From contig CATNEN010000025.1 of assembly GCA_950097015.1 (NCBI GenBank), forward strand, positions 5,022,001 through 5,086,000: a DNA stretch of 64,000 bases, in the 5' to 3' direction. The notes below the pieces were generated by a model. The model searched no databases and was not told where the DNA came from. It worked only from the letters and a program-made list of their open reading frames with translations. Below are positions 18,183 through 24,100 of this stretch, one piece after another. The translations under genes and the position numbers were made by a program. Each line of letters opens with the position of its first letter. The stretch's first letter is position 1. The stretch is from Macrostomum hystrix (Eukaryota > Animalia > Platyhelminthes).

Positions 18183-21100
18183 GCCATCGCGGCCGCCACC
18201 CGGAATGTCGTGACAAAGAGCGGCGCCATCAAGGAATTCCGCTCCGCCGAGGCTGCCTGCCAGGCATCGATGCTGGAGCGTCGTTTTGCCGACTGGCGCT
18301 CCGCCTCCTCAGCCGAAGTCAGCAGCAGGCAGGACTGTCCTGGTGGCTTCGATGGCCTCTTGTGCTGGCCACCGTTGCAGCGGGGTGCCGTCGCTTCGGC
18401 CGCCTGTCCATCAAGCTTGTTCGGCAGCCTCGACGATGGCCACGAAGGTGTCGCTCGTCGACGTTGTCCGGCGCTGACTGCAGCCGATGGCAACGACAGC
18501 TTCATTGACGATGGGAGTTCCGGCTTAATTGAGGAAGGTGCCGCTCAGGCGGTCACCGACTTCAGCGAGTGCCATCCGCTGGACGAGGAACTTCTAGATT
18601 GGGTTGTGAAAGCGGTGAGATGCTTCTGCTTTGAGTTGGTTTGTCTATGGCTTTGTCTCTCAAAATCATGTTATAGAAGGTATTGGACTTCAACAACACT
18701 GATAAAGCGCTTTGCACTCACCTTTCTCCTCTGCACCTACCCCACTCCTTCGAACCCACCTCACTCCTTATCCCCACACCGAACTCACTCCCCACACCCA
18801 CCTCACTACCCACACCCACCTCACTCCCCACACCCACCTCACTCCCCACACCCACCTCACTCCATACACCCACCTCACTCCACATATCAATCTCACTCCC
18901 CACACACAACTCACTCCCCACACACAACTCACTCCCCACACCCACCTCACTCCGCACACCCACCTCAATCCACACATCCATCTCACTCCCCACACCCACC
19001 TCACTCCGCACACCTACCTCACTCCAAACATCCATCTCACTCCCCACACCCACCTCAAATGTAGACGCAAGAAGTTCTACTTAGGAAATTCGCACTGCAC
19101 CACTGTACGATTTCTGTCAAATTGATTACTACGATATCTCATTAGTGCTTGACACCTGCAGGAAGAGACAGCCGCAGTTATTCGTTTGACACATTTCACA
19201 ATTACATTATTTCCTTGTCGATCCCTGGGCAATCTCCTGTACTTCAGGTCCTACAAAAAGTGGCATACTGTATAATGCCTTTTGGATAAAAGTACAACGT
19301 GCGTATCCCCCACCAACTCTGCAAAAGAAAAATAATAAATAGATTGAATTTCAAATCACGAAGGAAATTTCTTGCTACTATTTTAAATGAGAATTCGAAA
19401 CCTTAAATATAATTTTTTTACCGTTGTCAACAATCATTGCACTAAAGTCACTAGCAATAGTACGAGCTAAGAAGTGAAAAAACAGGCCGTGTAAAACACC
19501 TGTTCTTTTAACTTGTTGACAAGTAGGCTAAAATGTCAGCTTTCGAACTTCTAACCGACAGCTAACAACTCTGAGTTAAAAATAGATCGAAATAAGGATT
19601 AGCAAGCCAAGAAAATATGTGATATTATGAGACCGCATATTCATCAACATTTGCCTCTTCTTGGGTTGACTAAAGGGAAAACCGGGAAAATTTGATCAGC
19701 TTTGAACTAACGAAGTGCGAGTTACCTATGCAAAGTAACTCGCTCTTTTGCAGCCACAGATAATTGATATCCGCTCCCTACTGACTAGCAGAATCCGCTC
19801 CCTACTGACTAGCAGAATCCGCTCCCTACTGACTAGCAGAATCCGCTCCCTACTGACTAGCAGAATCCGCTCCCTACTGACTAGCAGAATCCGCTCCCTA
19901 CTGACTAGCAGAATCCGCTCCCTACTGACTAGCAGAATCCGCTCCCTACTGACTAGCAGAATCCGCTCCCTACTGACTAGCAGAATCCGCTCCCTACTGA
20001 CTAGCAGAATCCGCTCCCTACTGACTAGCAGAATCCGCTCCCTACTGACTAGCAGAATCCGCTCCCTACTGACTAGCAGAATCCGCTCCCTACTCACTCA
20101 CAGAATCCGCTCCCTACTCACTCACAGAATCCGCTCCCTACTCACTCACAGAATCCGCTCCCTACTCACTCACAGAATCCGCTCCCTACTGACTAGCAGA
20201 ATCCGCTCCCTACTCACTCACAGAATCCACTCCCTACTCACTCACAGAGTCCGCTCCCTACTCACTCACAGAATCCGCTCCCTACTCACTCACAGAATCC
20301 GCTCCCTACTCACTCACAGAATCCGCTCCCTACTCACTCACAGAGTCCGCTCCCTACTCACTCACAGAATCCTCTCCCTACTCACTCACAGAATCCGCTC
20401 CCTACTCACTCACAGAGTCCGCTCCCTACTCACTCACAGAATCCACTCCCTACTCACTCACAGAGTCCGCTCCCTACTCACTCACAGAATCCGCTCCCTA
20501 CTCACTCACAGAATCCGCTCCCTACTCACTCACAGAATCCGCTCCCTACTGACTAGCAGAATCCGCTCCCTACTCACTCACAGAGTCCGCTCCCTACTCA
20601 CTCACAGAATCCGCTCCCTACTCACTCACAGAATCCGCTCCCTACTCACTCACAGAATCCGCTCCCTACTCACTCACAGAGTCCGCTCCCTACTCACTCA
20701 CAGAGTCCGCTCCCTACTCACTCACAGAATCCGCTCCCTACTCACTCACAGCTAGAATCCGCTCCCTACTCACTCACAGAATCCGCTCCCTACTGACTAG
20801 CAGAATCCGCTCCCTACTCACTCACAGAATCCGCTCCCTGCCAAACCCACCTAGATGCGCTCAACCAGTGTGTCAAACGCCACCCAGCAGAAACGGCTGC
20901 TGCTGGAGCAGCTAATCTGTCGCCAGAAAGTTGCCGCCTTCGCTGAGAGCTCCGGGTTCGGGTTGGCCACCCACAGTGACTCCGGAATGTCGCGCTGTCC
21001 GCCAGAGTTCGATGGCGCGGTGTGTTGGTCGGAAGCAGCAGCTGGTAGCAGGGTCTGGGCGGCTTGTCCAGACTACCTCAATCAGCTGCTGCGGGACAGG

Positions 21101-24100
21101 CGCGCCAGCCGACTGTGCACCAGCAGCGGCCGGTGGCAGCGGCGACAAGATGAAGCAGGAGGCTGGACGAATTTTAGCGAGTGCTTCATCGAAAGAGAAC
21201 CGGTTGTAGCTTTTAGGCCGATCGCGGATTCAGGGTGGCTGAAAGTGAGATTTGAATGACTCAAAATTTATATTATGACAGTTCCGGGCGGCGATATTCA
21301 ATTGCAAGGAATCAGTCATTGTTTTAATAATATGCGTCATTGATTAGAATTAATGATTCATTGGGTGAACTGAGTGGATGATTGGGTGAAGTGAATGGGT
21401 CATTGGTTAATTAATGAATCATTGGGTGAATGAATGGGTCATTGGGTGAAGTGAATGGATCATTGGGTGAAGTGAATGAATCATTGGGTGAATGAATGGG
21501 TCATTGGGTGAATGAATGGGTCATTGGGTGAAGTGAATGGGTCATTGGGTGATTGAATGGGTCATTGGGTGAAGTGAATGGGTCATTGGGTGAAGTGAAT
21601 GAATCATTGGGTGAATGAATGGGTCATTGGGTGAAGTGAATGGGTCATTGGGTGAATGAATGGGTCATTGGGTGAAGTGAATGGGTCATTGGGTGAAGTG
21701 AATGAATCATTGGGTGAATGAATGGGTCATTGGGTGAAGTGAATGGATCATTGGGTGAAGTGAATGGATCATTGGGTGAAGTGAATGGATCATTGGGTGA
21801 AGTGAATGGATCATTGGGTGAAGTGAATGGATCATTGGGTGAAGTGAATGGATCATTGGGTGAATGAATGGGTCATTGGGTGAAGTGAATGGGTCATTGG
21901 GTAATGAATGGGTCATTGGGTGAAGTGAATGGGTCATTGGGTGAATGAATGGGTCATTGGGTGAAGTGAATGAATCATTGGGTGAAGTGAATGGGTCATT
22001 GGGTGAAGTGAATGGGTCATTGGGTGAAGTGAATGAATCATTGGGTGAAGTGAATGAATCATTGGGTGAAGTGAATGAATCATTGGGTGAATGAATGGGT
22101 CATTGGGTGAAGTGAATGGGTCATTGGGTGAAGTGAATGAATCATTGGGCCAATGAATGGGTCATTGGGTGAATGAATGGGTCATTGGGTGAAGTGAATG
22201 AATCATTGGGTGAAGTGAATGGGTCATTGGGTGAAGTGAATGAATCATTGGGTGAAGTGAATGGGTCATTGGGTGAAGTGAATGGGTCATTGGGTGAATG
22301 AATGGGTCATTGGGTGAATGAATGGGTCATTGGGTGAATGAAAGGGTCATTGGGTGAATTAATGGGTCATTCCGCTATCCGATCCACCTTCCAGACTCAC
22401 CTGGGAGTGGTCGATCTCATCGGGCTCATTGGCTATGGTTTGTCGCTGGCTTCACTGCTTATCGCCATAATGATCCTGACTGCTTTCAGGTGAGCTGCGG
22501 CTGCCGACTCAAAGTTCGAGATGCAGAATTATAGATGAGATGACACTGTGATGAGATGAGTTTGAGATGCAGAATTAGAGATGAGATGAGACTATGTTGA
22601 GATGAGTTTGATTTAGATAATTTGCTTTTTGGAAATCATCGTAGTTGTAAAAGTCGCCTAGCCTAAATTGACAAAGAAATGTTTATTTACCTGTGGCTGT
22701 CCGACCCCATATAAGAAGCCTATATTTGGCTGTGTCTACGCGAGCTACTGTTAGCCGTAATTGGCGCAGGTGACAGTGGGAAGCCTGCAAATCAGTATTG
22801 CTGAAGCAATTCCGGTCTCAGCTAGTCTAGCTATCCAATTTTAACAAATCAAAGCTAGGTGGCGTGGGTTTCAAACCGTAAACAGATTGCGGAAGTGTGA
22901 GCGGTCAGTGAGATTGAAATAAACACGAGAGAAAATGTTTTGGATGCAGGAGAGAGAGAGATTGGAAATAAAAGCATATAAAATATGGAATACACAATGA
23001 GGAATAGAGGATGGAGATCAGGGAATAGGGATTAGAAAATTGGGAATCAAAGAATGGGGATTAGTGAATAGTGATTAAAGAATGGGGATCAAAGAATGGG
23101 GATCAGAGAATGGGGATCAGAGATTGGGGATAATTGAATGGGGATCCGAGAATGGGGACCAAAGAATGGGGATCAGAGAATGGGGATCCGAGAGTACGGA
23201 TCAGAGAATGGGGATCAGAGATTGGGGATAATTGAATGGGGATCCGAGAATAGGGACCAAAGAATGGGGATCAGAGAATGGGGATCCGAGAGTACGGATC
23301 AGAGAATGGGAAATAGAAAATGGGGATGAGCGTGTGAGGACAGGGTACATAGGACTCGCTTGTTACTATAATATCCCAAACTAGCCTTTTTCAATCTTCT
23401 CACAGGAGGCTGCACTGCCAGAGGAATTCGATTCACATTCACCTGTTTGCCGCCTTCAGCCTCAGGGCGGGCAGGTATTTTGTGAACAAAACTGTACCAT
23501 GGGACACTCAGGTGAGCGAAGCCGCGATTGGAATCGTGGGATCAGGAGATATGAAGTGGGAATCGGATGGTTGGATGAATGGGAAATTGGGACGAGAGAA
23601 TTCAGAAGGGGTAATTGGGAAGGATTATTGGGAAGGTGTTATTGGGAAGGGATAATTTGGTAAGGTGTAATTGGGAAGGATTATTGGGAAGGGGTTATTG
23701 GGAAGGGGTTATTGGGAAGGGGTTATTGGGAAGGGGTTATTGGGAAGGGGTTATTGGGAAGGGGTTATTGGGATAATTAGGAAGGGTTTATTGGGAAGGG
23801 TTTATTGGGAAGAGGTTACAGCCAAGGGGTTATTGGTATGGGGTAATTAGGAAGGAGAAGGCCACAGGGAGCCAGAAATGCGGTAACTGAAATGGAAGTT
23901 TTTTTCTAAGTTCTGCAAAAAAAACTAAACTGCTCGTTCGCCCAAGCAGACTGTAGCCTGCCGCATTGACCAATCAGCAATGACCTTCGCGGTTGTCAGC
24001 TGCTTCACCTGGGTCTTTGTTGAAGCCCTGCATCTCTACGTGCTGATCTTTGTCAGCGCTCTGTCGCATAAGAAAATTGCAACTTTGGCCTACGCCGCAC

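Follow-up and report, generated by a model that had tools for sequence, protein, structure and literature searches.

Two ectodomain exons precede a single seven-transmembrane core

We analyzed a 64,000-nucleotide window of the flatworm Macrostomum hystrix genome (GenBank assembly GCA_950097015.1, contig CATNEN010000025.1, positions 5,022,001 to 5,086,000 of the forward strand), whose plus strand carries a class B1 G protein-coupled receptor (GPCR) gene with two hormone-binding ectodomain (ECD) exons, ECD1 and ECD2, and one seven-transmembrane (7TM) core. Coordinates are positions in this window, and HRM denotes Pfam family PF02793. Searches, folds and alignments of the window gene were made exon by exon, and a Macrostomum lignano protein with two HRM domains and a 7tm_2 domain (UniRef100_A0A1I8IK20, hereafter P0003), recovered by an exhaustive search with ECD1, served as a stand-in for the tandem fold. 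The match to P0002 was discarded as a low-complexity bacterial false hit.

The first coding exon holds the start codon and the signal-peptide coding part (14957-15019; 21 amino acids), as read from the sequence, and ends in phase 0. ECD1, the distal domain (18183-18614; 432 nt, 144 amino acids), and ECD2, the proximal domain that ends in the stalk (20855-21244; 390 nt, 130 amino acids), are both open, multiples of three in length, bordered by AG and GT, and in phase 0/0. Each contains six cysteines, at exon residues 26, 52, 61, 75, 95 and 130 in ECD1 and 22, 48, 57, 71, 88 and 110 in ECD2. Against a Pfam gathering cut-off of 26.2 bits, the HRM profile scored 33.4 bits (E = 5.8e-8) for ECD1 and 57.5 bits (E = 1.8e-15) for ECD2, bearing out a preliminary description of the locus, made from the letters alone, that had claimed two six-cysteine HRM exons in symmetrical phase. 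The two exons are homologous neighbors (33% identity over 79 columns, E = 2e-7), and the window contains no other HRM-type motif. We conclude that both are genuine HRM domains of a class B1 receptor gene.

The two domains differ in their motifs. ECD2 retains D, CW(S), CP and G-R-W, and only this domain carries the full class B1 ECD set (D, C-W-P, C-P, G-x-W). ECD1 keeps Asp, CWP and CP, has an insertion after Cys5, and reads G-N-D at the site where at least 90% of 45 aligned HRM domains have G-x-W, a motif listed as crucial for ligand binding (PMC1764030). The Trp after the fifth cysteine is thus missing, as had been noted, and the sequence supports the earlier suggestion of a degenerate, possibly regulatory ECD1. 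ECD2 matched the solved ECD structures of CLR and PTH1R in a PDB search (E = 1e-10 to 2e-9). The AlphaFold model of ECD1 (pLDDT 77.8, pTM 0.68), with a tail predicted to be helical, superimposed on the GLP-1R ECD with Z 10.0 and rmsd 2.6 over 99 residues and on PTH1R with Z 8.8; as modeled, ECD1 adopts the class B1 ECD fold. The claim that both exons finish with a similar W-x-K stalk did not survive alignment: the last 11 residues share a single identity (score -9, shuffle p = 0.29), the tails being unalike, and Cys6 lies 14 residues from the exon end in ECD1 and 20 in ECD2.

Downstream of both ECD exons lies one set of 7TM exons, seven in number (22395-26182), with phases consistent throughout, in line with the single core proposed earlier. 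Per-exon Pfam scans returned 7tm_2 matches in this downstream region. The TM1 exon (22395-22489, phase 0/2) matches profile positions 4-29 with E = 0.005, alone below the cut-off, and is followed by the ICL1-TM2 exon (23406-23511, phase 2/0; 18/27 residues identical to P0003). The exon for TM3 and the start of TM4 (23947-24109, phase 0/1; acceptor possibly 3 nt later) scores 40 bits. The next exon, covering TM4, ECL2 and the start of TM5 (24875-25008, phase 1/0), was placed by its open frame, its phases and a weak match to P0011, and the TM5-ICL3 exon (25121-25212, phase 0/2) by 22/30 identities to P0003. For the TM6-ECL3-TM7 exon (25728-25878, phase 2/0), the 7tm_2 match of the exon alone is weak; its best PDB matches are PTH1R and PTH2R, and 34/50 residues are identical to P0003. 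The exon for TM7, helix 8 and the tail (25970-26182) has N-x-E-V, the helix-8 Trp, 31/62 identities to P0003 and a putative donor. A probable last coding exon with the stop codon (26947-27069) was assigned from an open frame after an AG in phase 0, with neither homology nor read support.

The exon translations show H2.50, E3.50, T6.42, G6.50, N-x-E-V and the helix-8 Trp. TM6 keeps G6.50 and has Leu at 6.47, where 93 of 94 matched homologues have Pro and P0003 has Ile; TM4, split across 24109/24875, reads G-W-G-L-S, with Ser for the proline of G-W-G-x-P. Leu occupies 6.47 in human PTH2R too, a receptor that signals (PMC10166269), so this residue does not imply a dead receptor. No Pfam match to GAIN/GPS or adhesion domains was found on the ECD exons or P0003, which sets the gene apart from class B2, and no coding room was found in the interval between ECD2 and TM1, an intron consisting mostly of a 21-mer array. 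Two separate genes, with a 7TM core of its own for ECD1, were rejected since the window holds no second 7TM copy. An 825-amino-acid open reading frame (ORF) running through ECD1 (16587-19064) is an artefact of repeat units of 21 and 18 nt that stay in frame; in reality ECD1 is joined at its 5′ end to 15019.

Two micro-exons (19065-19104 and 19248-19291) had been proposed to join the ECDs. They do keep the frame, but within 18615-19768 (about 1.15 kb) the same is true of 241 other paths with two micro-exons and of 16 with one. Their donors (gtacga, gtacaa) depart from the mostly gtgag donors elsewhere in the gene, their GC contents of 0.45 and 0.34 compare with 0.61-0.63 for the ECD exons and 0.37 for the surrounding intron, and the alignment with P0003 contains no counterpart. 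We therefore rejected them as chance fits that are probably intron sequence.

ECD1 is spliced behind the signal peptide

Public reads and contigs were compared only with the repeat-free stretch 18160-18770, and the ECD1 stretch was present in one public sequencing run. The single contig of that run (221 nt, depth 4.1) matches 18183-18309 (127 nt) without mismatch, and the final 30 letters of its loose 5′ end are exactly 14990-15019, the last 30 nt of the first coding exon. Because 14990-15019 is joined directly to 18183, the contig skips a 3,163-nt GT-AG intron. ECD1 is spliced behind the signal peptide, and the gene is expressed. The 15019>18183 junction predicted from the letters is thereby seen in a public contig. 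The worry that ECD1 might be unconnected to the 7TM exons is eased in part: the exon is spliced to the signal-peptide exon, but the contig stops before the ECD1 3′ end.

Minisatellites of about a kilobase (16662-18157, 19769-20839 and 21358-22371) stop 15-25 nt short of the ECD1, ECD2 and TM1 acceptors. Such kilobase minisatellites are common in this genome and obstruct read mapping over the key junctions.

A paralogue favors the tandem arrangement of ECD1 and ECD2

Among the proteins fetched, P0003 was the best match for seven of the nine exons tested, namely ECD1, ECD2 and five of the seven 7TM exons, with local-alignment identities of 37% (43/117) for ECD1, 42% for ECD2 and 50-73% for the 7TM exons. 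The ECD1 exon covers P0003 residues 4-143 and the ECD2 exon 144-261, so that they abut without a gap. Furthermore, each exon scored higher against its own HRM position in P0003 than against the other (135 vs 68 for ECD1, 204 vs 91 for ECD2), indicating that the ECD duplication predates the gene duplication.

Residues flanking the join are conserved as well. The head of ECD2 (22 residues) has 10 identities with P0003 144-165, the inter-domain linker, a value reached by none of 20,000 shuffles, and the ECD1 tail matches P0003 133-143 with p = 0.0003; the registers came from the alignment, which makes both p values optimistic. In the AlphaFold model of P0003 1-262, a single helix (137-174; mean pLDDT 75) runs over the ECD1/ECD2 boundary. 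Cys6 of ECD1 and Cys1 of ECD2 would be 36 residues apart by direct joining, compared with 34 in P0003 and 36-48 in 13 of 16 arthropod tandem receptors; including the micro-exons would raise the spacing to 64.

On this evidence, the main product is probably a receptor with signal peptide, ECD1, ECD2 and 7TM core in tandem, made by direct 18614>20855 splicing. It would comprise 653 amino acids without the micro-exons, by arithmetic that includes the putative last exon. The preliminary description had left open whether the ECDs are tandem or interchangeable: their abutment and position-specific matches in P0003 favor the former, and swapping found no positive evidence.

Several observations weigh against this arrangement. 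The P0003 gene model is flawed (the TM1 and TM4 exons find no match in it), and because of such evident errors the adjacency of its two ECDs is not transcript proof; the weight would instead fall on the conserved sequence on either side of the join. The helix in the AlphaFold model was aided by an alignment of tandem receptors, and its domain placement is uncertain (pTM 0.55). Exon phases permit every skip. In addition, the sole contig ends at 18309 and has a depth of 4.1 in a single run that is not on record as RNA, and the ECD1 3′ junction (18614>20855) is absent from the reads and contigs compared.

P0003 resembles the window gene in its tandem HRM domains on a 7tm_2 core and in lacking P6.47. 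It differs in being a paralogue, an unstudied predicted model with missing exons, whose own first domain retains G-x-W. A database model of the window gene was not found; the P0003 query returned only itself and a nemertean receptor, and an ECD1 query confined to proteins of 80-250 amino acids, a length limit that makes it uninformative, returned nothing.

Possible alternative uses of the two ectodomains

We considered whether ECD1 could be an optional cassette, so that the gene would yield a long form with both ECDs and, through 15019>20855, a canonical form with one, and splicing would tune sensitivity or trafficking. All borders are in phase 0 and skipping introduces no stop, ECD2 alone is a complete canonical ECD, and PAC1R, CRF1R and CTR have known splice isoforms (PMC10166269). 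On the other hand, the sole junction seen (15019>18183) includes ECD1, and the conserved first 22 residues of ECD2 resemble a linker helix, making this reading unlikely.

Vertebrate class B1 ECDs are spread over several exons, in contrast to the window gene, where each occupies one exon. Splicing could in principle select among whole-ectodomain modules to make receptors (ECD1-7TM, ECD2-7TM and ECD1-ECD2-7TM) that differ in peptide specificity but share a single signaling core, which we regard as quite unlikely. To our knowledge, no class B1 receptor swaps one complete six-cysteine ECD for another. The closest parallels are PAC1R, CRF1R, CTR and GHRHR SV1, in which splicing alters receptor properties (PMC10166269).

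A stricter version, in which TM1 receives one ECD or the other and a single 7TM engine gains two mutually exclusive ligand-recognition modules, appears very unlikely. The phase 0/0 symmetry of both exons would permit it, and ECD1, predicted to fold as a complete ECD, is expressed downstream of the signal peptide. We found nothing that would enforce exclusion, however: the intron between the ECDs is 2,240 nt long and the double join stays in frame. No docker/selector pairing was convincing, since the inverted repeats listed were short and imperfect (the two best with both arms intronic measured 31 nt, 71%, and 20 nt, 80%), a comparison in which weak pairing could be missed. Moreover, the unlike tails of the two exons and the gap-free fit of the ECD1 tail and ECD2 head in P0003 argue against alternative attachment to TM1, and ECD1 as the sole ECD is hard to reconcile with its loss of G-x-W.

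It is highly improbable that ECD1 is a decaying duplicate or, with the signal peptide, a short secreted product ending in the intron as a soluble decoy: the lost G-x-W, the insertion after Cys5, the very long HRM-tree branch (5.66) and the end of the sole contig within ECD1 could be read that way, but a low-depth contig stopping mid-exon says nothing about the transcript end, and the open frame, six cysteines, D, CWP, CP and 43/117 identities to the first domain of P0003, preserved as the 7TM exons diverged to 50-73% identity, suggest long purifying selection on ECD1.

Receptor subfamily and candidate ligand

In PDB searches, the P0003 7TM region best matched PTH1R (E = 2e-21), followed by PAC1R, the secretin receptor and PTH2R, and no calcitonin receptor was among the 60 matches listed. 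The TM6 exon of the window gene matched PTH1R, PTH2R and GIPR only. These matches point to a class B1 GPCR of the PTH/glucagon/PACAP-type branch (cluster B, the iPTH receptor group), a placement that rests on best matches rather than on a tree with invertebrate PTHRs.

iPTH peptides activate invertebrate PTHR-like receptors in a beetle and a tick (PMC7224569; 10.64898/2026.06.22.733765), and the pairing of PXXXamide/QSGamide peptides with lophotrochozoan receptors has been assumed, not demonstrated (PMC8557429). By analogy, the ligand is likely an iPTH/PXXXamide (QSGamide)-type neuropeptide. Human PTH1R and PTH2R and the invertebrate iPTH receptors share with the flatworm receptor the best solved-structure 7TM match, the same ECD fold and, in PTH2R, Leu at 6.47. 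They differ in having one ECD each.

A proposed accessory role for ECD1

Two-step peptide capture and handover is the standard class B1 mechanism. The peptide C-terminus docks in the ECD groove, and a stalk ties the ECD to TM1 (PMC10166269). In the tandem receptor that we favor, an old duplication of a single-exon ectodomain, before the split from P0003, would have given rise to the ECD pair, and the ECD1 tail and ECD2 head would form one long helix keeping ECD1 away from the membrane. ECD2, on the stalk beside TM1 and with its motifs intact, would capture the peptide C-terminus and pass the N-terminus to the 7TM core, from which ECD1 would be too distant to present peptide. Since only ECD2 sits on the stalk with all motifs, and ECD1 would lie a helix away with its core Trp lost, ECD1 most likely acts as an accessory module, judging from sequence features. 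It may serve in weak pre-capture, in gating of the ECD2 groove or in protein contact, and would not constitute a second activating site.

Other features of the window

Downstream of the receptor gene, an intronless synaptotagmin-like ORF (31189-32796, plus strand) encodes C2 domains that score 95 bits in Pfam, together with a transmembrane segment and a hydrophobic N-terminus. A TMEM117 family gene (46716-49771, minus strand) appears as three ORF pieces matching profile positions 2-90, 89-318 and 313-411, probably exons separated by short introns. No Pfam match was found for two GC-rich minus-strand ORFs of 402 and 338 amino acids (34325-36551) or for a 353-amino-acid low-complexity plus-strand ORF with Thr-rich and His-rich repeats (37978-39039). 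Two intergenic stretches (13164-13223 and 33970-34066), similar by eye and in opposite orientation, are probably a dispersed repeat, and introns across the window are rich in minisatellites.

Tandem ectodomains in other class B1 receptors

The preliminary description implied that a double ECD is unique. Two- and four-HRM class B1 receptors are in fact common in databases: among 130 fetched proteins, 20 have two HRM domains and three have four. A search for double-HRM receptors, recommended there, found them in M. lignano P0003 and in arthropods; apart from P0003, the two-HRM proteins are calcitonin/DH31-type receptors of chelicerates, crustaceans and early-branching insects. Three Logan contigs (2.2-2.8 kb) carry the coding sequence of one arthropod-type receptor, P0066, free of introns, which shows that there are class B1 messages with two HRM domains. 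Further two-HRM models come from Tachypleus, Argiope, ticks, Penaeus and Cryptotermes. One Tachypleus model (P0015, 789 amino acids) has four HRM domains ordered distal-proximal-distal-proximal, as if a two-HRM unit had been doubled.

The arthropod receptors, such as XP_046396658.1 of Ischnura and P0066, resemble the window gene in their tandem HRM domains on one 7TM core, in a similar spacing and in a divergent distal and a conserved proximal domain; across the 16 arthropod tandem receptors, which are related and not independent sequences, mean pairwise identity is 33.5% for the distal domain and 55% for the proximal one. They belong to another subfamily, however, and their distal domains retain the Trp after Cys5. 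The 7TM exons of the window gene score far lower against arthropod calcitonin-type receptors than against P0003, which suggests an independent duplication in a PTH-receptor-like branch, so that the ECD duplication described here probably arose separately from that of the arthropod calcitonin/DH31 branch. In an HRM tree, the long branches left the Macrostomum domains unplaced, and a separate origin was neither shown nor excluded by it.

Four-HRM proteins include fish calcitonin-family receptors. A Stegastes receptor (A0A3B4ZRE7 / XP_008287491.1) likewise has repeated HRM domains on one class B1 7TM core, but with four copies, three of them closely alike, and in the calcitonin subfamily. A pufferfish calcitonin receptor with four tandem hormone-binding domains was reportedly described by Nag et al. 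in 2007. The pufferfish receptor responds to salmon calcitonin (PMC6283891). No publication on class B1 receptors with two HRM domains, in invertebrates or otherwise, turned up in the literature that we searched, and apart from the fish receptor report we met no study of an additional, non-activating ectodomain.

Class B1 pharmacology assumes one ectodomain per receptor. Collectively, tandem ECDs occur in arthropod calcitonin/DH31 receptors, in fish calcitonin-family receptors and, as the Macrostomum genes suggest, in a PTH-receptor-like branch, apparently with a separate origin each time. This is a modest result and does not define a new kind of receptor. Nevertheless, divergence is greater in the far domain both in arthropods and here, and the recurrence of the arrangement suggests that an additional ectodomain, itself non-activating, serves some purpose; the M. 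hystrix gene, with each ectodomain in one in-frame exon, offers a clean test case.

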